Assembly: GCA_946965045.2 (NCBI GenBank)
Contig: OX337230.1
Location: 3,968,001-4,032,000 of the forward strand
Origin: Epithemia pelagica
Taxonomy: Eukaryota > Protista > Bacillariophyta
DNA: 64,000 nucleotides
Direction of reading: 5' to 3'
The position numbers were made by a program, and so were the translations under genes. Under the pieces are notes generated by a model that worked only from the letters and a program-made list of their open reading frames with translations, made no database searches and was not told where the DNA came from. Position 1 is the stretch's first letter. Every line of letters begins with the position of its first letter. Below, one piece after another: positions 30,313 through 61,253 of this stretch.

Positions 30313-32229
30313 CGAGATGGGTCGCGTTTGGAAAGTCGACGCACCAAGACACACATAGATCCATGAAACATCCTTCAGCAAAAATAGGAACGAAACAAGA
30401 CTACCTAGTGAAGAAACGGACAATATATCTGATCCAGAGAGACCGTTGATGAGTTGAGGGGAGCCACCCAGTCAAACGGATTCGAACAACAAGAGTCATC
30501 GAGGAGGACAACGTTGTGACAGAGAGTGGACGGTCATCGGAAAATGGCAAATAGTTCCATTAGTATCTTTTTGGCAACCACAGAATTCGTTCCTACTAGA
30601 GTCTGCTGCAACACGTTCCGGAACGTGTCACGGATTCTCTCTCCGTCGTCTGTTGGAATGAATTTTTGTCTTTGCCGACGAAAAACCCATGCACCGTACC
30701 AAACGCCCCAGTGCCATTCCACGGCAACCACACCGATCTCCGAGGAGAGGAGCGGAATCCAACGGAAAAAAGCTTGTAAAAAAAGACAGTGCGTCTACGA
30801 CAACTCAATCTGCCTCGGCGGGCCATCTGAAGGCTTCCTCTGTTGCAGCTGTTCATACGAGGGAGAGAACTCCAATTGAGGTAGCAAGCATTCGAGGACG
30901 TCCATGAAAGTTGCTTCCATTTCTTCTTCTTCGTCCATGAAATCTAAACTATGAGATGTACCATGCATCGTTTTCCTTGTACCACCGGCACCTTCAGAAC
31001 TTCTAGAATCGTGGCTTTCCTGCGGAAGACCATCATTACAAGAACGGACCTGCTTCTTCTCGGGGCTGCCAGACGAACCTCTTTTGTTGTTGCCTCCGTC
31101 GTCGTTACTATCTCCTTCATCTTCTCCTTCATCTTCTCCTTCACCCTTTTCCATGATTGCACCACCTTCCATGCGTTGGGGGAACATTTGATTCCAGGAT
31201 GCACGATTTAGAAAGTCTGTCGGAGCTGAGGAAGCATCCGGGGCCTTCATCATGTGGCGGATAAGATAGTTTGCTTCCCCTTTAGAAGTTGCTGCGTATT
31301 CCATAAGAGCATTTTTCTTTCTGCTGAACCAATAGAAGTTCCATCTTGGACCAAGATCCGTCATGATTGTGAGAATGCCTGTATCTTTGTTCAGAAAACT
31401 AGCTGACAGATGCTGTAGAACAACCTGACGATGAATCTCTTCGGTGGCGTTGTTCTCTTGTTTCTTCAGTTCGATGGCAGCCCACATGTGTCTTTTAGCT
31501 GTGTGGATTCCTTGATGTCGGTTTGCAGCCATCACGACATCAATATTGCCTCTTGTCTTAATGCCAGATGGTAAAAACCTAACGGACAAGAAAGCACCGG
31601 ACTTGGCTGCATCAAAAAGCTTGCTTCCGTCAGGGAGACATAAATTGGAACTTCTGAGGTAGGCCATGTACTGGCTACGATTGTCTTTGGAATCCTCATT
31701 TTTAGTAGCATCCCAATAAAACGGAGCCATGTTCGTGCCTAGCTCATCGCATGCTCGCTTTGTGTCCTCATCCGGTTCCCAATCTGGTGCATCGGGTACA
31801 ATTCCAATCGCATCGATGGCTCTATTGAATCCTGATACCGACGGGTTGGAGATAACTAGAGTTTTTTCCTCCTCCTGTTGTAGCTTCACCCAAGTGTAAA
31901 TGGAGTTAATTTGCGCAGGCGTATCCAATTCGCTCGTGTCGTCTTCCCACTCCGCCGCGTCCCTTTGAAAATGAAAATTAGACGGCCTCTGCAGAAACAC
32001 AGTCAAATACAGAGGTGCATGTGCCGTCAAGGGACGTGGTAAATTAAAAAAAATGATGTGAGGGCTTCAGTTTGTTGACTCTTGGATGGCGTCATGCGAA
32101 ATAGATTGTTGTTCCTGCGGTCATGTAGTTCAATACTAGCCATCCGTCTCGAAAATAGGTGAAGTAGGCAAAGAGAGATTCGAATCTCAACATCGAATAC
32201 AGATACACAATCACAAATTCAAACTCACT
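30313..32229. repeat. 1.9-kb direct segmental duplication, copy 1 (copy 2 is 53720-55631)
   Basis: Near-identical sequence from CGAGATGGGTCGCG to the splice donor; only a handful of substitutions and small indels seen. Confidence 0.97.
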
Positions 32230-32459
32230 TGTGCCTCCTTTTCTTCGCTGGTTCTTTCTGCCTTTCGGAGACGAATAATATATCGATTGAGTCTCCTTCG
32301 CGCAAAGAAATCGGTAACATTTAATGCGTCATATACTTCAGTCATATTTTCATGTTCAGGATCAAATTGCTCAAGGGGTATGCCAGTACCAGATCCATCT
32401 TTATATGCTGCAGCTGCTTTTTTCCATCGCCGTTCCTCATCTGTTGTTTCCATTTCCAT
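30795..32459 (-). CDS. Crinkler(CR)-like effector A: helical SAM-like header exon + REase-fold (PD-(D/E)xK) exon
   Basis: Exon 1 is 32459-32229 (77 codons), phase-0 intron 32228-31989, exon 2 is 31988-30795. Motifs FYWDATKNEDS..NR.QYMAYL, RGNIDVV...IELKK...RQVVLQ...LTIMTDLG.RWNFYWF resemble CRN C-terminal nuclease-fold domains as recalled. Confidence 0.75.
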
Positions 32460-32932: not shown

Positions 32933-35030
32933 TATCAGCGTTCACACAATGAACATGCGCCTCCTCCAAACTCAGCACAGCACATACAAGTTCACGATTG
33001 ACCTCGCACCACATCCTACGAATACATCTAGTCATAATTTCCAAATTTGTAAAACACTCACTACACAGATTTCATTCGTCCCTAGCAGTTTACATACTGT
33101 CAACCGGATTGGACCGATCGACCATGGGAACCTCCACTATTGGAACGGCCGCCTCGTTCGGAACTCCCACGAACAACTCATCGGAGAAACCGTACCTCCA
33201 TTTAACAATGAGAGGTTATGAGCCCAAGCGGTCTCACTGGGCTTTAACCGTGTTCCCTTTACTTTTGTTTTTATACTTCACGATGAAGTTTGATTTACTT
33301 ATCAGTTCAATCGCGATGCGACAGGCTTTACAATTGCCTGAATCCAAAATGCGAACCGAACCACCTCTCGACGGGATCAAGTGGGAGTCAACGTTGCAGT
33401 TGCACATGCATCCGAATACTTTCTGGTCACCCAACCAAATCGCTTCGTTGCCCTTACCTTTACGATTACCTGCACGATCACTTGCACCAACACTCACTTT
33501 TTGGACGAATCCAAAACAGTTACGTGCCAATTGCTTTACGTCGTTTCCATCTACCTCTACGATCACCATGAAGATCCCGACTCCGGTTTCAACCCCCAAG
33601 AAGTCCTCTGGGACGGCCTCCTTTACGGCGGATACCACAATCAATGGTATCTCGTTGACTGCTACGAAAAGTCGCAACTTCGACTTGGGCGCCTTTGCTG
33701 ACACGATTACCCCTGCTTACCGCAGTAGCTTGTCCGGGAAGACGTTGTTTGATTTTCGCAACGATGCTGTTGTTGGTTTGACTCCTCCCTTCAGTTTCTC
33801 TTGGGCCGTCGTCAGTACGACCGATGACAAGTCGTTCTTCCAAGACAACAACAAGACGATGATGCAACTCTACTCCCTCAAGGCCCGGTTGACGACCTAC
33901 TGCATGCATTCGGTTTTTGACATCCTACCTGTCGATCCGGATACCGGCGTGCTTGATTCTTCCGGTGGAACTTTGAACTTGCTGGAACATGCCTGTTCGA
34001 TCTCTGAAGCCCAGGTTCGTCTCAGCAGCCAAATTTATGCTGAACGTACTACGGACAACCTGCATCCGCAGAACTTGTCTTGGACCCAGGATTTACTTTT
34101 GGCCTCTTGCGATGGCACGCTTCGGGCAGACCTCGAGAATCGCTTGGTGACTATTCCCGATAACGAACAAGGTGGGCCCTTGGTTTTACACATGGTCTTG
34201 TCCCAGTTACTCATGACTACAAGTGAAGCAGCCCGTGGAATCGTCCGTCGTTTGGAGAAACACAAGGTGACTGACTATCCAGGCAAAAATATCACTCAGT
34301 TTTGTTGTACGTTTAACAACGTGGTTCTACGCCTTAGTTTGAGCGGTCATATTCCATCTGACATCTGTGGGATTTTCCAAGAGCGCCTTCTCACTTGCAC
34401 CGTCCCGAAGTTCCTCAGCATGATGGAGTATCTCAACAACGACGACGATCCCATCCTTCAAGACTTTTTCGGTTTACGAGAACGCGTCGTCGCCAAGTAT
34501 CAGTCGCTCCTTCTCTCGGAGAAATGGTTGCCTACAACTACTTCTGGTAGTGCAGCCTTTCCAGCCTTGACCGAAACGAAGAAGACTGGCGTCCTTAATG
34601 ATGGATCCAAAGGCAAACGTCCTCCCGTTCCCATCGATACTACACCTCCGGCCGACGGCGAAGACAACTGGAAATTCCATCCAACGAACCCCAAGCGTAA
34701 ATTGTGGTGGTGCGCACTCTGTCCCAATGGGACTCCAACTGGCACGGGCCGTTGGGGCAACCATAGTACCGATCGTCATGATCCCACCAAGGTTAAGCGT
34801 AAATCCTCTGAGACGCCTTCAGCTCCAGCTGCTAACACGGCCTCAGATGCTGGACCTTCCGACTCTCCCACTGCTGCACCGTCTGCCTCGTCGACTACTG
34901 GGGACGATGCTGCACCACCGACCTATGCCAACGTTGCCTTGACCTCCTTGCGTGATTTTCGCTAGGGCGGGTGTTTCTCCAGCACTCCAATGCCCTCTAT
35001 CCCCCTTGGTTGGATACCTTGTTTTGTTGG
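32933..35030 (+). mobile_element. Truncated Copia (CoDi-like) LTR retrotransposon: 5' LTR, PBS and gag; pol missing
   Basis: LTR 32933-33213 (starts TATCAGCG) is homologous to the LTR at 46125-46392. PBS GGTTATGAGCCC at 33214. gag ORF ends at 34965 and is closely similar to 44367..46220. Homology stops at about 35030. Confidence 0.9.
33124..34965 (+). CDS. Copia gag-like protein with zinc-knuckle-like WWCALCP...H motif
   Basis: Closely similar to the gag of the intact element; ATG lies inside the LTR. Confidence 0.8.
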   Translation: MGTSTIGTAASFGTPTNNSSEKPYLHLTMRGYEPKRSHWALTVFPLLLFLYFTMKFDLLISSIAMRQALQLPESKMRTEPPLDGIKWESTLQLHMHPNTFWSPNQIASLPLPLRLPARSLAPTLTFWTNPKQLRANCFTSFPSTSTITMKIPTPVSTPKKSSGTASFTADTTINGISLTATKSRNFDLGAFADTITPAYRSSLSGKTLFDFRNDAVVGLTPPFSFSWAVVSTTDDKSFFQDNNKTMMQLYSLKARLTTYCMHSVFDILPVDPDTGVLDSSGGTLNLLEHACSISEAQVRLSSQIYAERTTDNLHPQNLSWTQDLLLASCDGTLRADLENRLVTIPDNEQGGPLVLHMVLSQLLMTTSEAARGIVRRLEKHKVTDYPGKNITQFCCTFNNVVLRLSLSGHIPSDICGIFQERLLTCTVPKFLSMMEYLNNDDDPILQDFFGLRERVVAKYQSLLLSEKWLPTTTSGSAAFPALTETKKTGVLNDGSKGKRPPVPIDTTPPADGEDNWKFHPTNPKRKLWWCALCPNGTPTGTGRWGNHSTDRHDPTKVKRKSSETPSAPAANTASDAGPSDSPTAAPSASSTTGDDAAPPTYANVALTSLRDFR

Positions 35031-35040
35031 ATCTGTAGCC

Positions 35041-35106
35041 GTTGTATTCTTGCTGATTGGAGAGTAGTAAAGGTTTGCCATCAACAGTGATTAGCTTGCC
35101 CTCCAT
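35041..35106 (-). pseudogene. Truncated CR header exon (ubiquitin-like type), 22 codons
   Basis: MEGKLITVDGKPLLLSNQQEYN aligns with MARKRIIVDGKPVQLSNHQEYN at 55813 and 58748; similar TTGGAAC(A/G)xCACCATGG start context. Confidence 0.75.
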
Positions 35107-39624: not shown

Positions 39625-42600
39625 CTACCAACCCATGATCTTTTTGCGAGCCGTTTCGAAAGGTCCTGTGTCCAATGGTTTGGTAAAGGCATCGCCAAGT
39701 TGATCTGTCGTTGCGATCGCTTTCATGAAGATGCCGTTTGGATCAGTGCTGTTGGGTGAGTTGATGTGTGCGCGGAACCAGTGATATTTGATTCCAATGT
39801 GTTTGCTACGTGGTGTCATTCGCGGTGGATCTTTCGTCGCCAGTTGTAAGGCGGCTTGATTGTCTTCCCAGACGGTGCAAACGAAACTTGGGCCCGCTGG
39901 ATTCAGATGCAAATGAGTAATAATCTTGGCCAATTGATTGCGTAGTGGAAGGAGTGTACGCATGCTGGTTGAGGCAGCAATATACTCGGCTTCCATGGTT
40001 GAGAGTGCAATCTCAGTTTGTAGTTTACTGCTCCATGTGATGGGGGATTGACCGATGGTAATGATGAACCCGGTGCGCGACCGTACGGAAGTTGGATCAT
40101 CGGGGTTCTCGTTACTCCACAGGCCAGCGAAATCGGCGTCCACATAACAATGCAGACTCAGATCCTTGGATGGTTTTAGGATTAGGCCCCTCTCTGCGGT
40201 TCCCATGAGGTAGCGACCGATTCGTTTTAGTGCCTCTCCATGTAGTGCTGTGGGGTTGTTGCTGAATCGTGCCGTTTGGTTGATGGCGAATGCGCAGTCG
40301 GGTCGCGTGTTATTCCCGAGGTAGAGGAGCATGCCCACCACCGATCGGTAATTGTAGTCGGCGTTGAGTGGTGTTCCGTCCAGGTCTTTTCCAATTGTTT
40401 TCGTGGCAGGTGTAGCCTTGGGATTGGATTTGTCGAGTCCCAATGCGCTGATGATGCTACGAGTCAAGTGCGGTTGTCGTAGCTCGACGGTGCCATTCTC
40501 ATGATGCTTGATTTCAACTCCGAGGTACGTTGGAAGATCTCCGAGATGTTCGTAGTCCATCTTCGTCTGTGTCAGTCCCTCGAGGATTCGATTGACGCTT
40601 GCTTCGTCGTGTCCACAAATCACTGCGTCGTCAACGTACGTGATCATCACACAGCCCATTCCGATGAAGAGACATGGGTCGGAACCGTCAGGCTTGAGTC
40701 CAATTTGTTCCAGTTTGTTGCGTAGGTAATCGTACCATAGTCGTGGTGCCCGGCAATCGCCGTAAAGACTCTTGGTCACTTCTAGGACTTTGTCGCTCTG
40801 GCCTGCCCCATACCCTTGTGGCAGATTGACATAGATCGGTTCGGGTAGATCCGATTGGACAAAGGCGTTCTTGAAATCGATTGAGACCGTGTGTAGATTG
40901 TGTTGGATGGACAAGTTGAGAAGAAGACGGACGGTTGGCCAATCAATCACTGGTGCGAAGGTATCGTCTCGGCTAAAAGATGCCTTCTGCTGATCTCCAC
41001 GGACGACCAACCTTGCTTTATACCGTGAGATGGTCCCATCTGGTTTCCGTTTCCGTACAAAGGTCCACATAACGTCTACGATCTCCTTTCCTTTCGCTTG
41101 GATACGAGGGACAAGTTTGAATGTTTTCTTGTTCTCGAGCTCGTTTAACTCCTTGTCCATAGCCGCAATCCACTTGTCCTGTTCTTCCTGAGACAACAAG
41201 CGGATGTCGAAGTAGGATGGCGCGTCTTCGTTAATGGCTTTGGCACTGAAGTAGAGTGGATGCCAATCGTCGATGATGCCCAATGGCGACTGGATTTGAG
41301 CCAAGAGCCGCGAATCGAAGGTGGATGTGAGCTTGTCTGGGTCTAGTCCGTTAGGAAAATCCCACTTGATGGAGTTGGCATAGTGTCCAAAAGCTGTTGG
41401 ATCGTCGTTGATAGCCGTCATGGAGAAACGTTGCCCTGTGACACTTGTGTGTGCCCAAGAGCTGTCTTGATGGGAATCCACATTGTCTGGAAATCGTACT
41501 GGAGCGCGACGTTGACGGTGAGGTCGGCCTGTAGTGGGTTCATGCGTCGCATCAGAGGCTGGACTTGGTGACGACTCGCCCGTTTTTGAACGAGGTGACG
41601 ACTCGCCCGTTTTTGAACGAGGTGACAACTCGCCCGATTTTGAGCTGGGTGACGACTCGCCCGGTTTGGATCGAGGTGTGGTAGGCATGTCGTCGGAAGT
41701 GGAATCGAAAGAGTCAGTCTCGTCAGTCTCGGCAAGAGGTGACAGAGGAGTGATATCGTCCAATTGGATGGGTGTCACGTTAGGATGAGATTCAAGAGTC
41801 GTCCGGCGATGGTTACGACCAAGATCTAATGGTGTGCTTGGTGTAGTAGGCTGGTCGTGTGACGGTTGCTCTGCTCGCTCGCCCTCGGGGATATTCGGAA
41901 CTGGAAGGGACGAAGTGTCGTCGAAGGATACCTTGGGAAGGGACCAGACTGAATCCAAGTCGGGTAATGGTCCATCACGTGTCGGATCGTGGTCGTCGAG
42001 ATAATGATCGCGGGTAAAGAAGTCGGGTAAACTGTTGTCTTGGGGGAATGACCACGTGCTGTTGACAGACATAAATAATTCGTCGTACACCACATGAAAC
42101 TGGGGGGAAATGTGGCCAGTGTCCAAATTCCGAATCATGCCCACCAGACTAGAATGTTGGGGAGAGAAACCCAAGAACTGACCACGACGAGACCGGCGTG
42201 CCCACTTGGGAAGTTTCTTACCGTCCTGCAGTTTTGGATCCAACACGTAACTGGGACAACCCCACACACGAACTCGACGCAGCAGAGTACAATCGATCTT
42301 GGTGCCAGAGAACACTTCCATTGGACACATGTCGTTGTCTTCTTGAGGGACGTGATTGTAGATCCAGGTGGCGTATTCAAGGGCCATGGGCCATAAAGAC
42401 GGTGAAAATGCTGACGGCCATCGAATGTGACAATGGATCATCATGGCTCGGGCCATGTATGTAACTGTTTGAATTGCCCGTTCAGCACCTGCATTGGCAT
42501 GATGAGCTCCGACACCAGAGAGTGTGCTCAAGGGAGAAGGAAAAGTGTTCCGATTGGTCTTGAGAGATTCCTGAAAGGCGTCTGAGGTAAAGACACCGTT

Positions 42601-44361
42601 ATCAGAATGGTATCGAGTAACCTGTCGGCCAGCCTGATGGAGGGAGACTTCGAATTGGTTCTTGGAATTAATGGTGTCGCTGCTACCAAGGGAGACTTGT
42701 GGATAGCAGAAAATGGCTTTTGAACCATGGTCAAAGAAAATGGTACCACCCACAAAGCGATGCTCTGGTCTTTCACGGCCTCGTGTGTGCCAAAGGCGGC
42801 CTCGAACGGTGGACTCGAAGTGATCCATTGAAACCAATTCACCGGGAGAGAGTTTTCGGTCTGTTGGAGTCAAATGGCCTGCTTGGGAGTGTGGTACATT
42901 AGCCTTGGACTGGATTGGCCGACGTCGAGCTTTGGCGTACAAACATGCCAGGCATTGTGGTGCATCACAACTACCACTGCTCTTGAATGTGCAAGGTAGA
43001 CATGATGATGTGCCATCGCTTGGGTCAGAGTTCGAGTTGTCACGATAGAGCCTCTGGAGACGACGCATGTGAATATGTCCCAAGCGTTGATGATCCAACA
43101 ACAATTGTTTCTGTGGTCGGCTCAAGTTCCGATTCATCTCGTCCAAGGGATTTTCGTCATGTTCGGCCAAGAACTGATGCAATGTGAGCTGATTATTGGT
43201 CACAGATGCAGTTTCCAAGTGACATCGACACCACTGATTAAATCCGCAACGACAATCAACCGGTCGGTGCTGGGCTGTTGCTTGAGTGTGATTCTTGATG
43301 TGTTTCACTCGAACGATGGGAAGATTACTGGAATAGTCGATGGGTACAGTAATACGCCGTTCGGATTCCTTGTCAATCATAATGCTTGCGAATGATTGGT
43401 TGCTGACGAAAGTTGGGAAACGTTGGTCTTGACGGAGGTAAGCAGCGTTAATCTGTGGAGAGCAAAGTCTTGTACCAGCTGCCTTACAGAGGTTGGCTGG
43501 ATAGACCCATCGTCGTACAGTGCCGTCTTCGTGAATGGCGTCATATCCAACAATACCGGTACCGATGATAGGAAAGCGGTTGTCACTTGCGGCAGTGGAC
43601 ATGGATCCGTAATTACCGTATACCAACTCAACAAAATCATCCTCACGCATGGTTAAGCCATTGGAGGCGCCAGTGTCAAGGATGATGGGTACCACTGGAT
43701 CACTTGGAGCGTCGTCAGTGTGAGCGACTTGAGATACGATCATGGTCGGATCAATATGATGCATGGCATAACGGTATGTGAAACGGGGTGTCTCACAATT
43801 CGCACGTAAAAGGTTGCTAAAATCTGGACCAAGGGTATAGATCTTGGGATCTCTTGACAAAGGTAACAACTTGAGCTTGTCGTAACAATCAACCGTGTGA
43901 TTGTGCAAACGTAAAGCACGTATCGTGGGCCAATGGTTCCAATTCGTGGCAGATCTTGACTTGGACCATGTGCGTCTTCGTGTTCTCGTACCATGCTCGC
44001 CCCTGACCCGTGGAGGAGTGAAACTCATGACTCCCAAAGGGTAAGTTGACGACGTGAACATGAGGAGATGAAAGGCAAGGTAAAGGACCGAAAGTGGAGT
44101 CAAACAAATCACGTGATCGGATAAGCAAAGGCGACTATCGAAACCACTAGGAGGAAAATGGAACGGAGGTTTGGGAAGCAATCGATTGAGGTGGCGAAGG
44201 TGAGCTCGACTGGACGACGTAAACCGATACAAACAACCAACCAAAGTCAACACAAAACAATCAACCGTCGAGATCAAACAAAACCAACCACAGAGGCATA
44301 GCCAACAAAGAATGGTGTCCAACCAAGGAGGATAGAGAGCATTGGAGTGCTGGAGAAACAC
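39625..44361 (-). CDS. Copia pol (protease, integrase, reverse transcriptase, RNase H)
   Basis: ILDTGAS; LLLDHQRLGH...CLAC; DHF...SDNG...AERAI; YKARLVVRG, YVDD; YVDADFAG, EAEY, WEDNQ, DAFTK. Lies in the -1 frame relative to gag. Confidence 0.97.
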   Translation of the reverse strand: MFLQHSNALYPPWLDTILCWLCLCGWFCLISTVDCFVLTLVGCLYRFTSSSRAHLRHLNRLLPKPPFHFPPSGFDSRLCLSDHVICLTPLSVLYLAFHLLMFTSSTYPLGVMSFTPPRVRGEHGTRTRRRTWSKSRSATNWNHWPTIRALRLHNHTVDCYDKLKLLPLSRDPKIYTLGPDFSNLLRANCETPRFTYRYAMHHIDPTMIVSQVAHTDDAPSDPVVPIILDTGASNGLTMREDDFVELVYGNYGSMSTAASDNRFPIIGTGIVGYDAIHEDGTVRRWVYPANLCKAAGTRLCSPQINAAYLRQDQRFPTFVSNQSFASIMIDKESERRITVPIDYSSNLPIVRVKHIKNHTQATAQHRPVDCRCGFNQWCRCHLETASVTNNQLTLHQFLAEHDENPLDEMNRNLSRPQKQLLLDHQRLGHIHMRRLQRLYRDNSNSDPSDGTSSCLPCTFKSSGSCDAPQCLACLYAKARRRPIQSKANVPHSQAGHLTPTDRKLSPGELVSMDHFESTVRGRLWHTRGRERPEHRFVGGTIFFDHGSKAIFCYPQVSLGSSDTINSKNQFEVSLHQAGRQVTRYHSDNGVFTSDAFQESLKTNRNTFPSPLSTLSGVGAHHANAGAERAIQTVTYMARAMMIHCHIRWPSAFSPSLWPMALEYATWIYNHVPQEDNDMCPMEVFSGTKIDCTLLRRVRVWGCPSYVLDPKLQDGKKLPKWARRSRRGQFLGFSPQHSSLVGMIRNLDTGHISPQFHVVYDELFMSVNSTWSFPQDNSLPDFFTRDHYLDDHDPTRDGPLPDLDSVWSLPKVSFDDTSSLPVPNIPEGERAEQPSHDQPTTPSTPLDLGRNHRRTTLESHPNVTPIQLDDITPLSPLAETDETDSFDSTSDDMPTTPRSKPGESSPSSKSGELSPRSKTGESSPRSKTGESSPSPASDATHEPTTGRPHRQRRAPVRFPDNVDSHQDSSWAHTSVTGQRFSMTAINDDPTAFGHYANSIKWDFPNGLDPDKLTSTFDSRLLAQIQSPLGIIDDWHPLYFSAKAINEDAPSYFDIRLLSQEEQDKWIAAMDKELNELENKKTFKLVPRIQAKGKEIVDVMWTFVRKRKPDGTISRYKARLVVRGDQQKASFSRDDTFAPVIDWPTVRLLLNLSIQHNLHTVSIDFKNAFVQSDLPEPIYVNLPQGYGAGQSDKVLEVTKSLYGDCRAPRLWYDYLRNKLEQIGLKPDGSDPCLFIGMGCVMITYVDDAVICGHDEASVNRILEGLTQTKMDYEHLGDLPTYLGVEIKHHENGTVELRQPHLTRSIISALGLDKSNPKATPATKTIGKDLDGTPLNADYNYRSVVGMLLYLGNNTRPDCAFAINQTARFSNNPTALHGEALKRIGRYLMGTAERGLILKPSKDLSLHCYVDADFAGLWSNENPDDPTSVRSRTGFIITIGQSPITWSSKLQTEIALSTMEAEYIAASTSMRTLLPLRNQLAKIITHLHLNPAGPSFVCTVWEDNQAALQLATKDPPRMTPRSKHIGIKYHWFRAHINSPNSTDPNGIFMKAIATTDQLGDAFTKPLDTGPFETARKKIMGW
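41555..41670. repeat. 27-bp tandem repeat in the pol integrase-RT spacer (GESSPRSK units)
   Basis: GGTGACGACTCGCCCG... repeated about 4 times. Confidence 0.85.
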
Positions 44362-44366
44362 CCGCC

Positions 44367-46220
44367 CTAGCGAAAATCCCGCAAGGAGGTAAGGGCAACA
44401 TTGGCGTAAGTCTGGGGTGGTGCAGCAGTCGGTGTAGCAGGGGCACTGTCAGTCAAAGAGGTGTCGGCGGCTGGAGGAGAATCCGTAGTGTTCGCAATGG
44501 CAGCCGTGTCAGAGGGTGTGGCTGCAGGAGAGCGGCTGGAATTCACCTTGGTGGGGTCATGACGGTCTGTGCTGTGGTTACCCCAACGGCCGATGCCGTT
44601 TGGAGTACCATTCGGACACAAGGCACACCACCACAATTTGCGCTTGGGATTCGTCGGATGAGGCTTGGAGTTGGCCTCACCAGGACCAGGAGGAGTAGTG
44701 TCGATCGGTAAAGGTGGACGACGACCATTGTTCGACTTGGGGGTTCCAACCGGAGCAGCTTTCTTGGTCTCAGTGAGAGCAGGAAAAGCGGAGGTATCGG
44801 TCTTGACGGTCGGAAGCCATTTCTCGGACAACAAAAGAGAATGGTATTTGGCCACGACACGTTCGCGTAATCCGAAAAAGTCTTGAAGGATGGGGTCGTC
44901 GTGATTCTCCAAATAGTCCATCATGCTGAGAAACTTTGGAACCGTGCAAGTGAGAAGTCGTTCGACGAAGATACTGCAAATGTCGGCCGGGACATGTCCA
45001 CTTAAGTTCAAACGTAGAACCACATTGTTAAACGTAGAGCAAAACTGATTTATGTTTTCACCCGGATAGGCAGTGACACTGTGTTTCTCCAATCGGCGGA
45101 CGATACCACGAGCGGCGTCGGTAGTAGTCGTCATGAGTTGCGTGAGGATCATATGAAGAACCAAGGGCCCACCCTGCTCGTTGTCAGGGATCGTGACCAA
45201 GCGATTTTCAAGATCGGCACGAAGAGTCCCATCACAGGAGGCAAGCAACAAGTCCTGAGTCCAAGACAGATTCTGCGGGTGCAGACTATCGGTGGTGCGT
45301 TCCGCATAGATCTGGTTGCTTAAGCGGACTTGAGCCTCGGAGAGCGAACAAGCATGGTCGAGTAAGCTCAAAGTAGCACCTGACGAGTCCAAAATGCCGG
45401 TTTCTTCATCAACAGGAAGGATATCAAACACCGAATGCATGCAGTACGTCGTAAGACGTGTCTTGAGTGTATAAAGTTGCATCATAATCTTGTTGTTGTC
45501 GTCGAAGAAGGACTTGTCATCGGTCGTACTGACAACGGCCCAGGTGAAACTGAAGGGAGGAGTAAGTCCAACAACGGCTTCATTACGAAAGTCAAACAGC
45601 GTCTTCCCGGATAAGGAACTGCGATAGGCTGGAGAGACCGTGTCGGCGAAAGCTCCGAGTTCAAAAGTACGACTCTTGGCGGCAGTCAAAGTGATACCAT
45701 TCATCTGAGTATCGGCTGAAAGGGAACCGACTCCAGAGGTCTTCTTGGGCGTTGAAACAGGAGTAGGGATCTTCATGGTCTCAAAGATAGTAGGCAAAGG
45801 CAAGGAACTCAACAGCAAAGGTAAGCGGTAAGTTTGAGTCTGTTTTGGTTTGGACCAAAAAGTGAGTGTTAGCTCCCGTGCTCCAAGTTGTGTTGGGCCC
45901 AGTAACGGAGTGTTCTGGTTGGTGGACCAAGTCTCCAACTGCAATGTTGACTCCCAGTTGCCGAATGTCGGTCGCGTCAGGGTTCGGATTCGTGTAGGGG
46001 GCACAAATGAAATTTGTCGTACCACGAATGAATCGTTAAGTAAAACAATTCTTGTCGGTAAGTAAACGGTCATCAGTAAGGTGAATACTGTTACAACCCA
46101 GTGGAACCGCTTGGGCTCATAACTTGTCATTGTGAAGGAGTTTTCTGTTCCACCCGACGAGTTGTTCGTAGAATGTCCGAATGAGGCGGCCGTTCCATTG
46201 AGGGAGGTTCCCATGGTCAT
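44367..46220 (-). CDS. Copia gag
   Basis: 617-aa ORF starting within the 5' LTR; C-terminal WWCALCPNG...H motif. Confidence 0.85.
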   Translation of the reverse strand: MTMGTSLNGTAASFGHSTNNSSGGTENSFTMTSYEPKRFHWVVTVFTLLMTVYLPTRIVLLNDSFVVRQISFVPPTRIRTLTRPTFGNWESTLQLETWSTNQNTPLLGPTQLGARELTLTFWSKPKQTQTYRLPLLLSSLPLPTIFETMKIPTPVSTPKKTSGVGSLSADTQMNGITLTAAKSRTFELGAFADTVSPAYRSSLSGKTLFDFRNEAVVGLTPPFSFTWAVVSTTDDKSFFDDNNKIMMQLYTLKTRLTTYCMHSVFDILPVDEETGILDSSGATLSLLDHACSLSEAQVRLSNQIYAERTTDSLHPQNLSWTQDLLLASCDGTLRADLENRLVTIPDNEQGGPLVLHMILTQLMTTTTDAARGIVRRLEKHSVTAYPGENINQFCSTFNNVVLRLNLSGHVPADICSIFVERLLTCTVPKFLSMMDYLENHDDPILQDFFGLRERVVAKYHSLLLSEKWLPTVKTDTSAFPALTETKKAAPVGTPKSNNGRRPPLPIDTTPPGPGEANSKPHPTNPKRKLWWCALCPNGTPNGIGRWGNHSTDRHDPTKVNSSRSPAATPSDTAAIANTTDSPPAADTSLTDSAPATPTAAPPQTYANVALTSLRDFR

Positions 46221-53274: not shown

Positions 53275-53719
53275 CTTCCTGAACACACAGCACACAAACG
53301 ATAAATTCTTGGGCGACCTACATGCGAACAAACGTCGTAGAAATAAATTTTCTCAACAGCGCATCAGCATAAAGACTCAATCAGAGACGTTTCTCTTATA
53401 GATCTGTTAGAATAGTTATTCTGAGTAGTGTCTCAAAATAAGAAGGTGCGATGTTGACCGTCTCTAAATAAGCTTAGAATATGTCTTCTTTTGAGCTAAG
53501 TGCTAAGTAGACCTTTTCTATCCGAGTCTTATCTGCAGTGTCCAACTGCTAGAACTACCGACTGCAAACTGCGGACTACGGAGAGACCGCCTCCTCCACC
53601 CAATATTTTCTCACTCCCAGGTAGACTACCTGGAGGAAAACGGTTGTCTCCTAGACTCCTAAAATCCCAAACTTTTTGGACGATTGAAGCCTGATCCAGG
53701 AAAAAGCAATCCATCACAT

Positions 53720-55631
53720 CGAGATGGGTCGCGTTTGGAAAGTCGACGCACCAAGACACACATAGATCCATGAAACATCCTTCAGCAAAAATAGGAACGA
53801 AACAAGACTAGTGAAGAAACGGACAATTTATCTGATCCAGAGAGACCGTTGATGAGTTGAGGGGAGCCACCCAGTCAAACGGATTCGAACAACAAGAGTC
53901 ATCGAGGAGGACAACGTTGTGACAGAGAGTGGACGGTCATCGGAAAATGGCAAATAGTTCCATTAGTATCTTTTTGGCAACCACAGAATTCGTTCCTACT
54001 AGAGTCTGCTGCAACACGTTCCGGAACGTGTCACGGATTCTCTCTCCGTCGTCTGTTGGAATGAATTTTTGTCTTTGCCGACGAAAAACCCATGCACCGT
54101 ACCAAACGCCCCAGTGCCATTCCACGGCAACCACACCGATCTCCGAGGAGAGGAGCGGAATCCAACGGAAAAAGCTTGTAAAAAAAGACAGTGCGTCTAC
54201 GACAACTCAATCTGCCTCGGCGGGCCATCTGAAGGCTTCCTCTGTTGCAGCTGTTCATACGAGGGAGAGAACTCCAATTGAGGTAGCAAGCATTCGAGGA
54301 CGTCCATGAAAGTTGCTTCCATTTCTTCTTCTTCGTCCATGAAATCTAAACTATGAGATGTACCATGCATCGTTTTCCTTGTACCACCGGCACCTTCAGA
54401 ACTTCTAGAATCGTGGCTTTCCTGCGGAAGACCATCATTACAAGAACGGACCTGCTTCTTCTCGGGGCTGCCAGACGAACCTCTTTTGTTGTTGCCTCCG
54501 TCGTCGTTACTATCTCCTTCATCTTCTCCTTCATCTTCTCCTTCACCCTTTTCCATGATTGCACCACCTTCCATGCGTTGGGGGAACATTTGATTCCAGG
54601 ATGCACGATTTAGAAAGTCTGTCGGAGCTGAGGAAGCATCCGGGGCCTTCATCATGTGGCGGATAAGATAGTTTGCTTCCCCTTTAGAAGTTGCTGCGTA
54701 TTCCATTAGAGCATTTTTCTTGCTGCTGAACCAATAGAAGTTCCATCTTGGACCAAGATCCGTCATGATTGTGAGAATGCCTGTATCTTTGTTCAGAAAA
54801 CTAGCTGACAGATGCTGTAGAACAACCTGACGATGAATCTCTTCGGTGGCGTTGTTCTCTTGTTTCTTCAGTTCGATGGCAGCCCACATGTGTCTTTTAG
54901 CTGTGTGGATTCCTTGATGTCGGTTTGCAGCCATCACGACATCAATATTGCCTCTTGTCTTAATGCCAGATGGTAAAAACCTAACGGACAAGAAAGCACT
55001 GGACTTGACTGCATCAAAAAGCTGGCTTCCGTCAGGGAGACATAAATTGGAACTTCTGAGGTAGGCCATGTACTGGCGACGATTGTCTTTGGAATCCTCA
55101 TTTTTAGTAGCATCCCAATAAAACGGAGCCATGTTGCTGCCTAACTCATGGCATGCTCGCTTTGTGTCCTCATCCGGTTCCCAATCTGGTGCATCGGGTA
55201 CAATTCCAATCGCATCGATGGCTCTATTGAATCCTGATACCGACGGGTTGGAGATAACTAGAGTTTTTTCCTCCTCCTGTTGTAGCTTCATCCAAGTGTA
55301 AATGGAGTTAATTTGCGCAGGCGTATCCAATTCGCTCGTGTCGTCTTCCCACTCCGCCGCGTCCCTTTGAAAATGAAAATTAGACGGCCTCTGCAGAAAC
55401 ACAGTCAAATACAGAGGTGCATGTGCCGTCAAGGGACGTGGTAAATTAAAAAAAATGATGTGAGGGCTTCAGTTTGTTGACTCTTGGATGGCGTCATGCG
55501 AAATAGATTGTTGTTCCTGCGGTCATGTAGTTCAATACTAGCCATCCGTCTCGAAAATAGGTGAAGTAGGCAAAGAGAGATTCGAATCTCAACATCGAAT
55601 ACAGATACACAATCACAAATTCAAACTCACT
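53720..55631. repeat. 1.9-kb direct segmental duplication, copy 2
   Basis: Matches 30313-32229. Confidence 0.97.
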
Positions 55632-55813
55632 GGTTGGACAGGCGGCCCCAGCCTGTAGGTGCCGCTGTCATCAAGGGAATCAAAACCGCCTATTTCTGTG
55701 CCGTTCGTATCTTCAAGGCACTCCACGCGCTTTCGATTGATATAGTCGTTATATTCTTGGTGATTGGAGAGTTGCACAGGTTTGCCATCAACAATGATTC
55801 GCTTGCGCGCCAT
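54197..55813 (-). CDS. Crinkler(CR)-like effector B: ubiquitin-like header exon + the same REase-fold exon as effector A
   Basis: Exon 1 is 55813-55631 (61 codons, MARKRIIVDGKPV...SLDDSGTYRLGPPVQP), phase-0 intron 55630-55391, exon 2 is 55390-54197. Confidence 0.78.
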
Positions 55814-56304
55814 GGTGCTGTTCCAATTTTTGGGGGGAAAGGTTATTTGTGTGATTCTATATGTTTTAGGAGTATATTTATACGTCGCCTCTCAGTTAAA
55901 GTTTTGCTGACGTTTTATACGTGACTCAATTTCGCGTCAAGCGAGCTTGTGGACGTGGAAGAAGAACGGGTCGACACAGGCATGGTGCCAGCCGGAACTA
56001 CGAATCGCAGCAGAGCACTTGGAGAAGGAATCGTCGAACGAAAGCTGACAGAAGAACAACAACACTTGCCCACAAGGCCTCGCATTCGCATCGTGTCTCG
56101 TTCCAATCTCCAACAATGGAATGAACTTTTTTTGTTTGTGTACATGTTCTCTACAGAAATCGCTCTCCATACATATAGTAGTGTACTTTGGGAACAAAGG
56201 CGAACTTCTTCCACAAGAGATAGGTCGCGGTTGGAAAGTCGATGCACCGTACAAAACTCCCAGTGCGATTCCACGGCAACACCCTCCACCACAAGGAAAG
56301 AAAA

Positions 56305-56439
56305 GAAACGACAAAAGGATGATGATAGGAAACCACTTTTTCGTAGAAGAAGAAGATGCTCACGTTCGGTGAAACGACAAAAGGATGATGATAGGGAACC
56401 ATTTTTTTTGTAGAAGAAGAAGATGCTCGCGTTCGGTGA
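56305..56439. repeat. About 67-bp tandem duplication
   Basis: GAAACGACAAAAGGATGATGATAGG... at 56305 and 56371. Confidence 0.9.
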
Positions 56440-56595
56440 CGGACCCACTTCGTACATCCGACGAGTTGATAGACCAAAAACACTTACCAGACCGAGGCCA
56501 ATGGAACGCTTGAGTCGCAACATGGCAATGGGCACCACGACAAACCAGGCCGAATACAATTTACCAAGAAAGGCCAAATCCTTGCGTGCCAACAA
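56423..56595 (-). pseudogene. Copied fragment of the MATE gene 3' end
   Basis: ARKDLAFLGKLYSAWFVVVPIAMLRLK versus GRKDLAFVGKLYTAWFVLVPTAMLRLK at about 61800. Confidence 0.85.
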
Positions 56596-56603
56596 AAGAG
56601 TCG

Positions 56604-56690
56604 TTGTGTTTCGAAGGCTCTCAAGCGGGCTTGTCGTGGCTCACGATTTTGGGCAAACGACACGCCTATCGCAAAGCCAAAGCAGAAAGC
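56604..56690 (+). pseudogene. Copied, inverted fragment of a tag glycosylase gene
   Basis: FEGSQAGLSWLTILGKRHAYRKA versus LEGAQAGLSWLTILRKREAYRQA at about 29650. Confidence 0.85.
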
Positions 56691-56787
56691 AGGGGGGATA
56701 ATGGTCTTTCATTCGAAACAATGTTTACAAGTCGACCATATTCAATACCGAACGTTGCTTCAGAACACTAGGCCTCCTTTTAACGTT

Positions 56788-58748
56788 TCATAGTTGTCGT
56801 TTTGGGATGCGATGCCCGCCAGAGTTGACCGCCATGACTGTCTTTACAAAGGACTCTAGGTCATCTCTAGAGCTGTAGTGATACATACGTTCTTCCAGTG
56901 CAGCACTCACGGCAGCTTCGCTACCGTACCGAAAGGTTCCTGCGAACTCATAACCATCAGCGTCTGGACTCAACAGAGCAAATCCCCAATCAATCAGATA
57001 CAGGTTGCCGTTGGCGTCTTGCATGATATTTTCGGGGCGAATGTCCCGATGGAATACCCCAGCCGTATGTACAGTCTTTAAGAAATCCAAAATGCTGGCT
57101 ACATTTCCAACAGACAAAGTTCCAAGAAAGGGCCGCAGTAGCTGATCAAAAAACAACACACCGTTCGAAACCTTTGTGCATTTCAGAATTCCTGCAACTT
57201 TGGACTCCACCAAGCGATCCGATACGGCCTTCTCGTGGTCAGCAATATGCTGTAACCCATCTTTGAATACCTTGATCACTCCATTGTCTCCTCCCCAACT
57301 AGCCGAGTAAACTTTGGCAGTAGCCCCTTCTCCGACAAGGCACAAAACCTTGAGAAGTTTACCATCGACAGGTTCGTCAAACGTGGGAAAGTCTCGGCCG
57401 AGTTCTCTAGAAGACTTGGACAACATTGTAAGTAGTTGGCGTTGTCCTTCGCAACCAGGGAGCAGAGACGCGGGTTTTGTAACCTTGGAAACAAATTGTC
57501 CATCGACCTCCGTTGTTTCGGCCCAGCGGATTACTTGTTCGCCACGAGCGCAGTGGACTAAAGCCGTGTAGGCTCGGCGCCTTCCCCTTTGAATGCACAA
57601 TAATCGCTCACCATAGTCAATAATGTCCATCTGATCAGAGTCTAGAAACTCTTTCTTTTGTGCAAATGCTATTGTAACATCGTATTTTGATTGTGGTAGT
57701 TTGGGCCTCTCATACGAGGGAACCAAGGATTCACCATGAGTACATTCAGTCGTACAAAAATCAGGTTCCACGCCGGCAGATATTCCATTGTCTAATTTGA
57801 GCCAATGGCCTGATTTACTCCAATGTAGTTGCTGGTGAATGGTTCGTCCGGCTTGCACTGCCGATTCGATGAGTGTTGTCATCTCTTTCCAAAAATAACA
57901 ATGGTGGCTGTCGTCCTCGGATGGATCTGGACCATCGCTGCGGAATGCACTTGTCTCCACTGGATCAACTAGATCGAAAAAGAAATCCGTTTGAAAGGAC
58001 ATTCGTTTCTTGGCAATCAGGGATGAGAACGCGTGGCTCTTGGTAACGTAGGAAAGAGTTCGTTTGGGACGCTGCTTGTTCTCAAGAATGCCATGTATGA
58101 GTAGCATTGATTCAACCATTTCCTCGGTACGTCGTACGAGGGAATCGACGGAAAAAAGCTCTTTAGGTAACCAAAAGAGAGGTTGAGCAGTTATGATACA
58201 ACACTACAATCGGAATGCAGCAACAGAGAACAAAACAACAAACCTAAGCCACGCAACTTACCGTTATGCTGCCGGTGAATCGGTTCGTGTCGCCATGCAC
58301 GAGGGATTCCAAACAAGAGGGTTATTTTCAATGGACGACAAACGACGCCATTATCGGATCGGTGATGAAATGAGAGTAGGGAAAAGATGCAGGTAAGTTG
58401 AAAAAAGAGGCTGTGTAGGCTTCCATTCATTTGTGCTGTCCTGCGAAATGGAATGCTGGCAGTGTAGTTCCTCCCAGATAATAGGTGAAATCACGGGCAA
58501 AGAGATTTGAATCTCAACATCGAATACAGATACACCATCACAAATACTTCAAAAACACTCACGAATGGTTGGACCGGTGGACCCAACCGGTAGGTGCCGC
58601 CGTCATCAAGGGATTCAAAGCCGCCCATTTCTGCGCCGTTCGTATCTTCCAGGCACTTGACGCGCTTTCGATGGATATATTGGTTGTATTCTTGGTGATT
58701 GGAGAGTTGCACAGGTTTGCCATCCACAATGATTCGCTTGCGCGCCAT
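56788..58748 (-). CDS. CR-like effector C: ubiquitin-like header + REase-like + protein kinase; middle exon structure uncertain
   Basis: Header exon 58748-58563 followed by a GTGAGT donor and an intron homologous to that of A/B. ORF 56788..58119 has EPDF...AFAQKK...DYGERLL then GEGATAKVY, IKVF, HRDIRPENI, IDWGFA. Confidence 0.7.
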
Positions 58749-59206
58749 GGTGCTGTTCCAATGTTTGGTGAACCGTTTGTGTGATGCTAATAGAGGGAAA
58801 TAAAGGTGGGCGCGACCCCGTGGTCCCAGAGAACAATTTGCAGTCGTCTGGATTTGGCCCATTGCGGCATGGTATCATGGATCACGGGTGTGTTCGTAGT
58901 ACCCGAGAAAAATGTTGCGACACAATGACACATCCCCATTTGCGAAGGTTTCTTCGCAAAATTTCGGCAAAGCGCGACCCGAATCGTGTCGATAAGCAGG
59001 GACTGGTGTGGTGATGGAATGGCAGCTGGAGTTTTGGACGGTTCACATCGAACTTTTTCATCTAGCGTCACGCAAGTTTTGTGCGATACGATCCATGGAT
59101 TCAACACAAAAAGACAAAGACAAACACGGAACAACAACAATACAATCGTAACCGAAAGAAAAAGACACATCAATAACATTGAAAGGAACAACGAAACAGC
59201 AGACCG

Positions 59207-61253
59207 GTGAATAGCAACGACATTGCCAAGCAAAAGCGTCCACTAGGAGATGACGACGACGGTGATTCGAGCAGCAACGGCGCTGGCCGCTGCGGTGGTC
59301 CTGATGGGGAACGCTCAAGCCACGGCATCAGTAGGGGAGGGAAGCACCCGCGGATCGGCCATCACAAGGAAGAATCTTCTCGTGGCTCTAACACTTTTGG
59401 AAACTACCAACCCGCAACAAATGACAAAGACAAGAGTCTCCAAGAAACCATTCGGAAACTGCAAGCACAACTACAGGCACGAGCTGAACAAATACAGGCA
59501 CGAGCTGAACAAATACAGGCACGAGCTGAACAAATACAGGCACGAGCTGAACAAATGAGTCGCTTTTCGTTTGAAACACTTTGGACTGCCAACGCGGAAA
59601 ACTTCAAAGTTGAAAATGCAACATCTCTCTTCTCTCACGCCAAGGACAACCATTTTGGAGCACAAACCGTATTTGACACCAAGTTCCAGCAAAGTGGTCC
59701 CGACCGAGCCATTGTAGGCGCCATGATACGCCCATCGTCTCTTGTTCAAAAATTTCGAATAGGGATGGAAGAAAATGGATTCCAAAAGCATATGGGAGCG
59801 AGGCAGACATTTGCTCTTTCATTTTGGCGGCTGTAGAGGATATTATTTTTCTAGCATAGCAAGCAGGTATCGTCACGGCCAACAAAGTATTTCCCAGGTT
59901 GGAACGGAGTCTTCTCGGGTACCGCCCGGACATTTGATGATTCGAGACGAGGATGGAATCGGATTGGTTGCAATCGTAGTGAAACAGCCTGTTGAGGAAG
60001 CTGAGAGGACGTTGATTGATTATGAAAATGTTGTCGGTCATGCCTATGACCAAGCCCAAGCCATGACCGCTTTCGGGCAAGGAACATCGACCGTCGTAAT
60101 TTCGTCTTTTAAAGAATCCTTTCTTCGCTCCTTGGAGCCGGATGGTCTTTGCTCGGCTGAACACTTACAAGATGACGTCGTGGTTGAGACCGAGACGGCT
60201 AATCAAGCTGCGAAGAATATCAATGTGGCTGAGACCAAGAGATCAGCGATGCGGTGCACTGATACCTCTCCTGGTGTCTCTGGATTTCGAGATATTTCCA
60301 GTCTTTACATCGGGAGTGGAGCTGGTGGTGATTCCAGCAGCTCCACTCCCGATAGAAAGACTGGATCGACCTTTCTTGCTGAGCAAAATCGAAAACAAGA
60401 TCGAAAAATATACTCGACAGCTTCACATCGACCACATGATCTCGTTAGGATGTTGTATGATGCAACCAAGATTGCTAAATCAAAGTACACCACGACTCAG
60501 ATCTTCAAGCTCGATGCTAATAAATCGTACGAGTTTCCAAAGGCACTTTGTGTTGTCGACGGTGAGAAAGAAACATACTGCTGGGGAAAGTTGCAGGCCA
60601 CACTGGGTTACCAGATCGTAAGTAGAAAACACCAGTCCTTGAAACCAACGGCAGCCAAGCAGGAAACGATTGACAGCAATGACAAACAGTCGTATTACAT
60701 TATCGGAAGTCTAGGTCAGGGTTCAACCTCAAACGTCTTTCAAGCTCTTACCTGGGATGGAGAGCACGTTGCCATCAAAGTTTACGTCAAGAGGTATGGT
60801 GACCACTATGAGAGTCTCGACGATTCGGCATTTCAGAATGTTGCAACAGCAGCAGTGGAAAGGGAAAAGGACCATCTCCTCCTCTTCTACCCAGAATTGT
60901 TCGAGGATAAAGTCAAGACTGCAAAACTGTTTGGTCGACCATGCCTTGTCATGCCATTTATTCATCCTTTGACAAGGAATGAGCGATTCGATGCTACTAC
61001 GTTGGCTAGTATGGAAAAAGTTCTTGGGGAACAATTTCTAGGAAAGAACCTTCGATACAGCAAGGACGACGTAAGATGGCGTCATGTTGGGAACTATGCA
61101 AGCAAAGACGGGCCGACGCGAATAGCTTTGTCCAAAACACAATGGACAGTTTCAAAGCTCGCAAGGTCATTGAGAAAGAAACTAAGAGCCCTGTCTTTGT
61201 GTCCAAGGAAACGAATCAAGAGAATGTTCGAGTGTGTGATTTATATTGAATGA
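59207..61253 (+). pseudogene. Degenerate coiled-coil + REase + kinase-like (CR-like) gene
   Basis: Switching frames at about 59760 and 59930 and reading through TAG 59857-59859 gives YGSEADICSFILAAVEDII...RLERSLLGYRPD.LMIRD...IVVKQP...GHAYDQ, then LGQGSTSNVF, VAIKVY, CLVMPF, DDVRWRHVG. Confidence 0.65.
59472..59556. repeat. 21-bp perfect tandem repeat x4 (heptad QARAEQI)
   Basis: TACAGGCACGAGCTGAACAAA repeated 4 times. Confidence 0.97.

Follow-up and report, generated by a model that had tools for sequence, protein, structure and literature searches.

Introduction

CR (Crinkler/RHS-type) proteins have mostly been studied as pathogen effectors. As described in PMC5289972, they carry ubiquitin-like or other headers, and a restriction endonuclease (REase) joined to a kinase accounts for about one sixth of their C-termini, as one of the two commonest kinds; the class occurs in pathogens and in free-living eukaryotes. 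In CRN8-type proteins, cell death needs the nuclease motif and not kinase activity, with a regulatory part proposed for the kinase (PMC5289972). The hosts of CR-type genes named in PMC12957317 are chlorophytes, plants, amoebozoans and animals, and the literature searched yielded no paper that ties genes of the Crinkler type to the genome of a diatom itself. The subject here is gene C of the diatom Epithemia pelagica, which lies with two further genes, A and B, in a stretch of 64,000 nucleotides (GenBank contig OX337230.1, positions 3,968,001 to 4,032,000; hereafter the window) corresponding to contig ctg1262l of ENA assembly ERZ21939226. Coordinates are positions in the window, and all three genes are on the minus strand. 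Gene C probably belongs to a modular family that extends across diatoms and resembles CR proteins in its build, with a beta-grasp header, a shared phase-0 intron and a nuclease-kinase body put together; in the body, a PD-(D/E)xK nuclease would be followed by a protein kinase of FunK1-like type in the same protein.

A header with a predicted ubiquitin-like fold

The ATG at 58748 (minus strand) starts a header peptide, MARKRIIVDGKPVQL...GTYRLGPPVQPF, whose exon ends at 58563. An original prediction, made from the letters of the window, had described this header as close to that of gene B (its effector B), as ubiquitin-like and as followed by a homologous intron, and all three statements agree with what was found. 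The header peptides of genes C and B are 87-89% identical, and the underlying DNA forms an ungapped repeat of 203 nucleotides (55631-55833 against 58566-58768; 91% identical) that takes in about 20 nucleotides of 5' leader. A 48-nucleotide pattern for the start of this header, termed header 2, was matched twice (58748 and 55813) against zero expected. Among 1.84 billion proteins, a profile of three header-2 sequences retrieved 140 cluster representatives, most of which are exon-sized open reading frames (ORFs) of 55-130 residues.

An AlphaFold (AF2) model of the header, built on 66 profile matches, has a predicted local distance difference test (pLDDT) score of 89.7 and the order beta-beta-alpha-beta-beta-beta. 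When it was compared with the PDB by Foldseek, all leading matches were beta-grasp proteins, at E-values of 0.04-0.4, including the doublecortin domain of TgDCX (6b4a; template modelling (TM) score 0.66-0.67) and, at 0.68, a conoid fibre protein, together with the ubiquitin-like (Ubl) domain of EccD, a bacterial Ubl protein, ubiquitin, SUMO and ISG15. The header is thus predicted to be ubiquitin-like, that is beta-grasp, at the level of fold. A Pfam search at E<=1 with both header-2 copies and ten other headers returned no family, the Crinkler N-terminal domain included; the motifs LxLFLAK and HVLVxxP do not occur in the gene C header translation, and an ESM-Atlas feature search with the header gave no usable match.

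A third header-2 start is present at 35023-35106 on the minus strand (MEGKLITVDGKPLLLSNQQEYNGY..., the same variant as at locus L004, described below) and ends abruptly after 28 residues. It adjoins a 655-residue gag-like ORF (32998-34965, plus strand) that is similar to an ORF at 44367-46220, and the copy looks like a header exon broken by a retroelement.

A nuclease-kinase body

Downstream of the gene C header lies a 443-codon ORF (58119-56788, minus strand) with its own ATG at 58119. It had been predicted to encode a degenerate PD..xK region followed by a kinase with HRDIRPEN and IDWG, and both parts were recovered. The kinase scores 42.4 bits with Pfam Pkinase (PF00069) against a cut-off of 31.7 (E 7.4e-11), kinases in the PDB match the body down to 1e-7, and the motifs are intact: GEGATAKVY (G-loop), VIKVFK (Lys), HEKAV (alphaC Glu), HRDIRPEN and IDWG. 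In the predicted structure of the preceding domain, the alpha-beta-beta-beta-alpha-beta core of the REase fold (PD-(D/E)xK superfamily) is present, with DrdV (7.9), SgrAI (7.5), Cfr10I, Bse634I, NucC, NgoMIV, Hjc and type I HsdR as structural matches. This fold became visible only with a wide VIA-align search; when the nuclease model was compared with the PDB by Foldseek, nothing matched at E<=0.001 and mitoribosomal proteins filled the top rows, and comparing profiles of the B-type and C-type bodies (those of genes B and C) with PDB sequences gave nothing meaningful.

The catalytic residues of the family are D133 (in GVEPDF) and E166-x-K168 (in AFEQKK). Gene C keeps D133 and K168 and has Ala at position 166, where 30 of 32 relatives have Glu, so that the D...(D/E)xK set reads D, A, K; four further near-invariant positions are also altered. 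The downstream exon had also been called unrelated to that of gene B, whose header is followed by a 411-codon ORF, and indeed neither tblastn nor profile-profile comparison (hhalign) relates the B-type to the C-type body. For that reason the term REase for genes A and B remains at motif level, and the B-type body may be guessed to be a putative REase from its conserved NID...ELK.

Header-by-body combinations and the shared intron

The original prediction arranged genes A, B and C as a 2x2-style matrix of two headers and two bodies. Its missing fourth cell was found at locus L002, which together with L004 lies on contig ctg1338l of the same assembly: L002 has header 1 (DNA about 96% identical to that of gene A), the same intron and, after a phase-0 acceptor, an intact nuclease-kinase (P0002). 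At L004, a variant of header 2 is followed by a short intron that shares the 5' motif, and then by a nuclease-kinase that is likewise intact (P0009). Header 1, as found in gene A, is unrelated to header 2. The combinations extend across diatoms, in that the C-type body has at least six unrelated N-termini among its relatives; the B-type body occurs with headers 1 and 2 and with further ones, among them a SAM-like header, and long header-2 proteins carry kinase, STAND/TniB-like NTPase, trypsin-like peptidase, HNH or TPR regions. The relatives with a named source are from Attheya (one C-type body) and Seminavis robusta (among the B-type bodies). The modules occur in all combinations, their joints coincide with the intron, and every junction that was read is phase-compatible.

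The introns of genes C and B both begin GTGAGT...GTGTATCTGTATTCGATGTTGAGATTC, and their similarity extends for about 230 nucleotides and then fades; it is also seen in the introns of gene A and L002. An 18-mer from the intron core matched exactly three introns. A spaced pattern with a fixed gap of 16 nucleotides matched none, because the copies differ by insertions and deletions, and a search of 53500-60000 against Rfam gave no match, which means that the conserved intron does not represent a known RNA. Four sequencing runs (X1-X4) cover the locus, none of them on record as RNA. Run X3 is treated as RNA because it has zero depth at 58756-59143, immediately 5' of the gene C ATG, because its depth is about 25-fold lower in the gene B intron than in gene B exon 2, and because three of its four joints show GT..AG ends on the minus strand. 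Its joint 55390/55631 omits 240 nucleotides with CT..AC ends and cuts the gene B intron exactly, from ...VQP to RPSNF..., in phase 0. In the DNA runs, depth in the bin 55458-55651, which holds the gene B intron, is about 7-13 times that of the neighbouring bins.

Header exons all end in phase 0 and body exons (of gene B, L002 and L004) start in phase 0, so crossing-over in the intron could pair any header with any body. In the proposed mechanism, family members would share the 5' 45-230 nucleotides or so of the phase-0 intron next to the header exon, and non-allelic crossing-over within it, between tandem or clustered copies, would exchange headers at the 5' end and bodies towards the 3' end. 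The clustered, transposon-rich surroundings of the genes make such exchange plausible, and genes C and B are 2.9 kb apart in the same orientation. Genes A and B share a duplication of 1,920 bp (30313-32232 against 53720-55634; 99.06% identical) that ends no more than 4 nucleotides from the splice donor, which is counted in favour of the recombination that we infer.

A conserved element of about 40-60 nucleotides, GTTGCCGTGGAAT[CG]GCACTGGG...GTACGGTGCAT, was also observed, with three matches against zero expected (30707-30728, 54110-54131 and 56259-56280, minus strand). It lies about 70-90 nucleotides past the stops of genes A and B, with the third copy in the spacer between genes C and B, about 510 nucleotides past the stop of gene C. 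The element may represent either a 3' signal common to the genes or a piece of a repeat.

Splicing of gene C

The original prediction held that the gene C header and kinase could be spliced in frame between 58563 and about 58164. Its donor at 58563 stands; exon 3 starts at 58160, and the span contains two introns separated by a micro-exon of seven nucleotides (Table 1). Joint 58160/58262 of run X3 omits 101 nucleotides, the second intron, with CT..AC ends on the plus strand, and this junction recurs in a second variant contig. In one X3 contig (joint 58165/58563), 58563 is linked to 58160 through the seven letters CATAAAG. In the window, CATAACG (58268-58262) stands between ...CCGGCAG and GTAAGT; the difference of one letter points to another allele or a closely similar copy as the origin of the contig. 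Of nine AG acceptors in intron 1 put to a frame test, only 58270/58269 leaves the frame open, and the product with the micro-exon is a header-HNE-nuclease-kinase protein of 521 residues. Joining of header to body in frame, through the micro-exon and the second intron, is possible and apparently occurs, in line with the prediction. A single intron (58562-58161) that skips the micro-exon was rejected because it leaves the reading frame and meets a stop at codon 109.

Many transcripts would follow another course. Depth in X3 is about 200 over intron 1 (58174-58561), close to that of the exons, and the joint that keeps at least 23 nucleotides 5' of the second donor, and hence a long 'exon 2', has a depth of 105 against 43.5 for the micro-exon form; these depths are per-contig means to which paralogues may contribute. 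Intron 1 is therefore probably often retained. Header and body might then be expressed separately, as a header peptide of 85 residues (stop at 58491) and a kinase begun at the ATG of the 443-codon ORF. The depths and this ATG favour separate expression; against it stand intact paralogues and other diatoms in which header and body share one ORF or one phase-0 splice, and the conservation of the body, which starts 5' of the ATG, with a ..KR..E.. linker that aligns from residue 5 of exon 3. Separate expression is accordingly considered unlikely, and the spliced header-nuclease-kinase protein is preferred.

Table 1. Coordinates of genes A, B and C and of sequence features within gene C.
Feature	Position	Strand	Description
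Gene C, whole	58748-56788	minus	header exon and nuclease-kinase body
Gene C exon 1 (header 2)	58563..58748	minus	62 codons; phase-0 end, GTGAGT next
Gene C intron 1	58269..58562	minus	GT...AG; retained in part of the transcripts
Gene C micro-exon CATAACG (inferred)	58262..58268	minus	7 nucleotides, phase 0 to 1
Gene C intron 2	58161..58261	minus	GTAAGT...AAAG, phase 1
Gene C exon 3, first part	57373..58160	minus	linker and PD-(D/E)xK (REase-fold) domain
Gene C exon 3, second part	56788..57372	minus	protein kinase domain; premature stop ends at 56788
Nuclease residues in gene C	D133 57762-57760; Ala for Glu 57663-57661; K168 57657-57655	minus	AFAQKK 57669-57652
Kinase motifs in gene C	G-loop 57333-57307; VIKVFK 57279-57262; HRDIRPEN 57051-57028; IDWG 56994-56983	minus	
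Remnant of family C-terminal end, NYETLKGGLVF and stop	56763..56807	minus	+1 frame; breakpoint 56806/56807
Gene B 5' module	55391..55813	minus	header-2 exon 55813-55631 and phase-0 intron 55630-55391
Gene B exon 2	54197..55390	minus	body with invariant NID...ELK...Q motifs; putative REase
Gene A	30798..32459	minus	helical header-1 exon 32459-32229, same intron, B-type body 31988-30798

Probable decay of gene C

The kinase of gene C ends early in the assembled allele. Its stop lies 10 codons past ..NSGGHRI, leaving the kinase C-lobe incomplete, and relatives extend about 55 residues further, to ..[DN]Y..LK..LV[FY] and a stop. About 37 C-terminal codons are gone, with a frameshift at 56806/56807. 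Contigs of runs X2, X3 and X4 diverge from the window exactly at 56806, from both sides, and run into the missing family segment, so the organism also has an intact form, either an allele or a close copy, and this form is what X3 shows. The 5' part of the body has changed as well: the L002-type phase-0 acceptor, which is ancestral, is not found in gene C, where about 200 nucleotides of unrelated sequence and a second intron stand instead. Contigs of all four runs are 1.4-3% divergent from the window over gene C (56800-58150) and about 0-0.6% over gene B exon 2, and position 56773 is apparently heterozygous in X1 (depth about 60 for the reference letter against 65.8). Either the gene C locus is unusually polymorphic, or reads of close paralogues are mixed in.

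The lost catalytic Glu and the lost end of the kinase in the assembled allele suggest that gene C, though transcribed, is probably a decaying or non-catalytic copy. A stricter interpretation would make it a mere pseudogene, with the join a relic, the transcripts noise and no consequential protein. The Ala at position 166 and the four other altered positions, the C-terminal deletion with its frameshift, the vanished L002-type acceptor, the retention of intron 1 and the header copy at 35106 that stops after 28 residues beside a gag-like ORF all fit this interpretation. Set against them are a 443-codon ORF that remains open apart from these defects and preserves all its kinase motifs, the allele or copy with a full C-terminal segment that X3 displays, and a second transcribed variant with an identical junction between exons 2 and 3. 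A mere pseudogene is thus judged somewhat unlikely, and gene C is retained as a probable, if perhaps catalytically impaired, member of the modular family.

Site of action and mobility

The original prediction described the genes as a polymorphic effector system with delivered warheads, in which a header would carry interchangeable toxic parts into a competitor, a pathogen or a mate after secretion or translocation. The combinatorial signature of headers and bodies stands, and together with the set of enzymes (nuclease, kinase, HNH, peptidase, NTPase) it resembles oomycete and fungal CR effectors (PMC5289972); the greater divergence of gene C than of gene B exon 2 between window and runs also favours an effector. 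Delivery is the part that finds no support: the N-terminus of gene C has no signal peptide and no transmembrane or hydrophobic segment, the highest Kyte-Doolittle 15-mer mean in its first 75 residues being 0.36, which makes action inside the diatom cell likelier than export. Moreover, the relatives with a named source are all from diatoms (Attheya, Seminavis), organisms not known to be pathogenic, the nuclease of gene C has lost its catalytic Glu, and no immunity-like neighbour was noticed beside genes A, B or C in the ORF lists, in which no dedicated search was made. A secreted or translocated effector is for these reasons very unlikely.

Mobile elements might instead have carried or given rise to the genes, which would then be selfish nuclease-kinase genes spreading along with transposons and acting neither in host defence nor as effectors. 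The surroundings include a Ty1/copia element (39625-46220, RVT_2), the gag-like ORF beside the truncated header copy, and piggyBac-type and rve/RVT_2 ORFs flanking L002 and L004. The CR class as a whole is considered to derive from transposase nucleases (PMC5289972), and a CRN-like selfish element is described in animals (PMC12957317). On the other hand, no terminal repeats and no transposase were found within the units of genes A, B or C, the A/B duplication is a plain segment of 1.9 kb, and the conservation of the introns and the many kinds of header are more in keeping with host genes. An origin as mobile cargo is regarded as quite improbable, and membership of a modular family of host genes is the preferred account.

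Neighbouring genes

A Ty1/copia-type retrotransposon occupies 39625-46220 on the minus strand, with a 1578-residue ORF containing gag_pre-integrs, SH3_retrovirus and RVT_2, preceded by a 617-residue gag-like ORF. Head to head with gene C, at 59207-61253 on the plus strand, a 209-residue ORF with four AEQIQAR coiled-coil repeats runs into a 492-residue ORF that has DUF5898 (7.8e-9) and a kinase N-lobe-like GxGxxS...AIKVY; this neighbour may be another body of the nuclease/kinase type. Run X4 has a repeat-length variant of 89 nucleotides at 59459-59549. A 685-residue ORF at 2398-4455 (minus strand) matches AAA_16 / NPHP3_N, a STAND-type NTPase of the kind also found behind header 2 elsewhere, and tblastn detected no header upstream of it. 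On the other contig, a piggyBac-type DDE_Tnp_1_7 ORF and a 550-residue Kdo/APH-like kinase protein are near L002 (L002 1-3152), and RVT_2/rve polyproteins and a second Pkinase ORF are around L004 (1-1935 and 4817-7542).

Proposed role and significance

If the diatom proteins work as CRN8-type proteins do, a damaging activity would come from the nuclease and the kinase would regulate it, with the header as an adaptor for localisation or partner binding. As no signal peptide is present, an intracellular role, in defence, in cell death or as a selfish gene, would be the most likely one. A more specific version is that the shared intron, in which about 45 nucleotides at the 5' end are conserved beside unrelated headers, is kept as a dedicated adaptor for swapping cassettes in both directions, and that the proteins form an intracellular defence or cell-death system in place of exported effectors; it is put forward tentatively, as fairly unlikely to hold in full.

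Several points weigh against the membership of gene C in a CR-like family as set out above. The Foldseek E-values of the header model are weak (0.04-0.4), and the headers appear to lack both a Pfam match to the Crinkler N-terminal domain and the LxLFLAK and HVLVxxP motifs. Run X3 is treated as RNA on the strength of how it behaves, the contig with the micro-exon is one letter off the window and may derive from another allele or a close paralogue, and many gene C transcripts probably keep intron 1, so that their header ORF would stop at 58491. Five loci are the basis for deducing recombination in the intron, and the whole functional account would follow from the class to which the genes are likened.

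Diatoms are transformable. A large transcribed CR-type family in a photosynthetic diatom would therefore offer a tractable system in which header partners, the toxicity of bodies as opposed to protection, and active intron-mediated shuffling in a conflict gene family could be studied, and its gene structure exposes how the modules exchange. The shared phase-0 intron as a swapping joint is the distinctive new feature, the overall architecture being already known, and the families of headers 1 and 2 and of the B-type body lie beyond current Pfam coverage.

Comparison with known systems

The likeness of the header to doublecortin and other beta-grasp proteins is one of fold, with identities of 10-18% and E-values of 0.04-0.4, and carries no evidence of microtubule binding or conjugation. 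Bacterial polymorphic toxins also combine a constant N-terminal part with enzymatic C-termini that are swapped by recombination (PMC3482391). In the diatom, however, swapping would be two-way, since headers are exchanged too, and would run through an intron; there is no link to a secretion system, and neither a neighbouring immunity gene nor spare cassettes were noticed, with no dedicated search for immunity genes having been made.

Among named proteins, those closest to the body are probably fungal: FunK1 proteins (PF17667, Pkinase_fungal) with an N-terminal DUF6826 (PF20713) may share its two-part build. The ESM-Atlas clusters nearest the nuclease domain are the N-termini of Pkinase_fungal/DUF6826 proteins (score 0.94; 170 of 256 features), which serves as a lead only, and DUF6826 is weakly matched in 10 of 32 relatives (best E 0.0024). 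With PF17667, the relative P0036 scores 25.2 against a cut-off of 24.1, whereas gene C falls below the threshold (E 0.02) and the matches are weak. Headers like those of the diatom genes are not known from the fungal proteins.

The closest counterpart is the CR subclass with REase and kinase, typified by CRN8 of Phytophthora infestans. Compared with CR proteins and CRN8 as given in PMC5289972, the diatom genes differ in their host, in a joint formed by a shared phase-0 intron in place of a coding motif, in a start that is not signal-peptide-like and in a header with no sequence match to the Crinkler N-terminal domain. They agree with CRN8 in having a small ubiquitin-fold header (here a predicted one), a REase-fold nuclease and a protein kinase (PMC5289972). 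As in the CR class more widely, one header stands on many C-termini and one C-terminus under many headers, the genes are multi-copy and clustered, and recombination falls at the joint of header and body. This match of architecture would assign gene C to an already known class.

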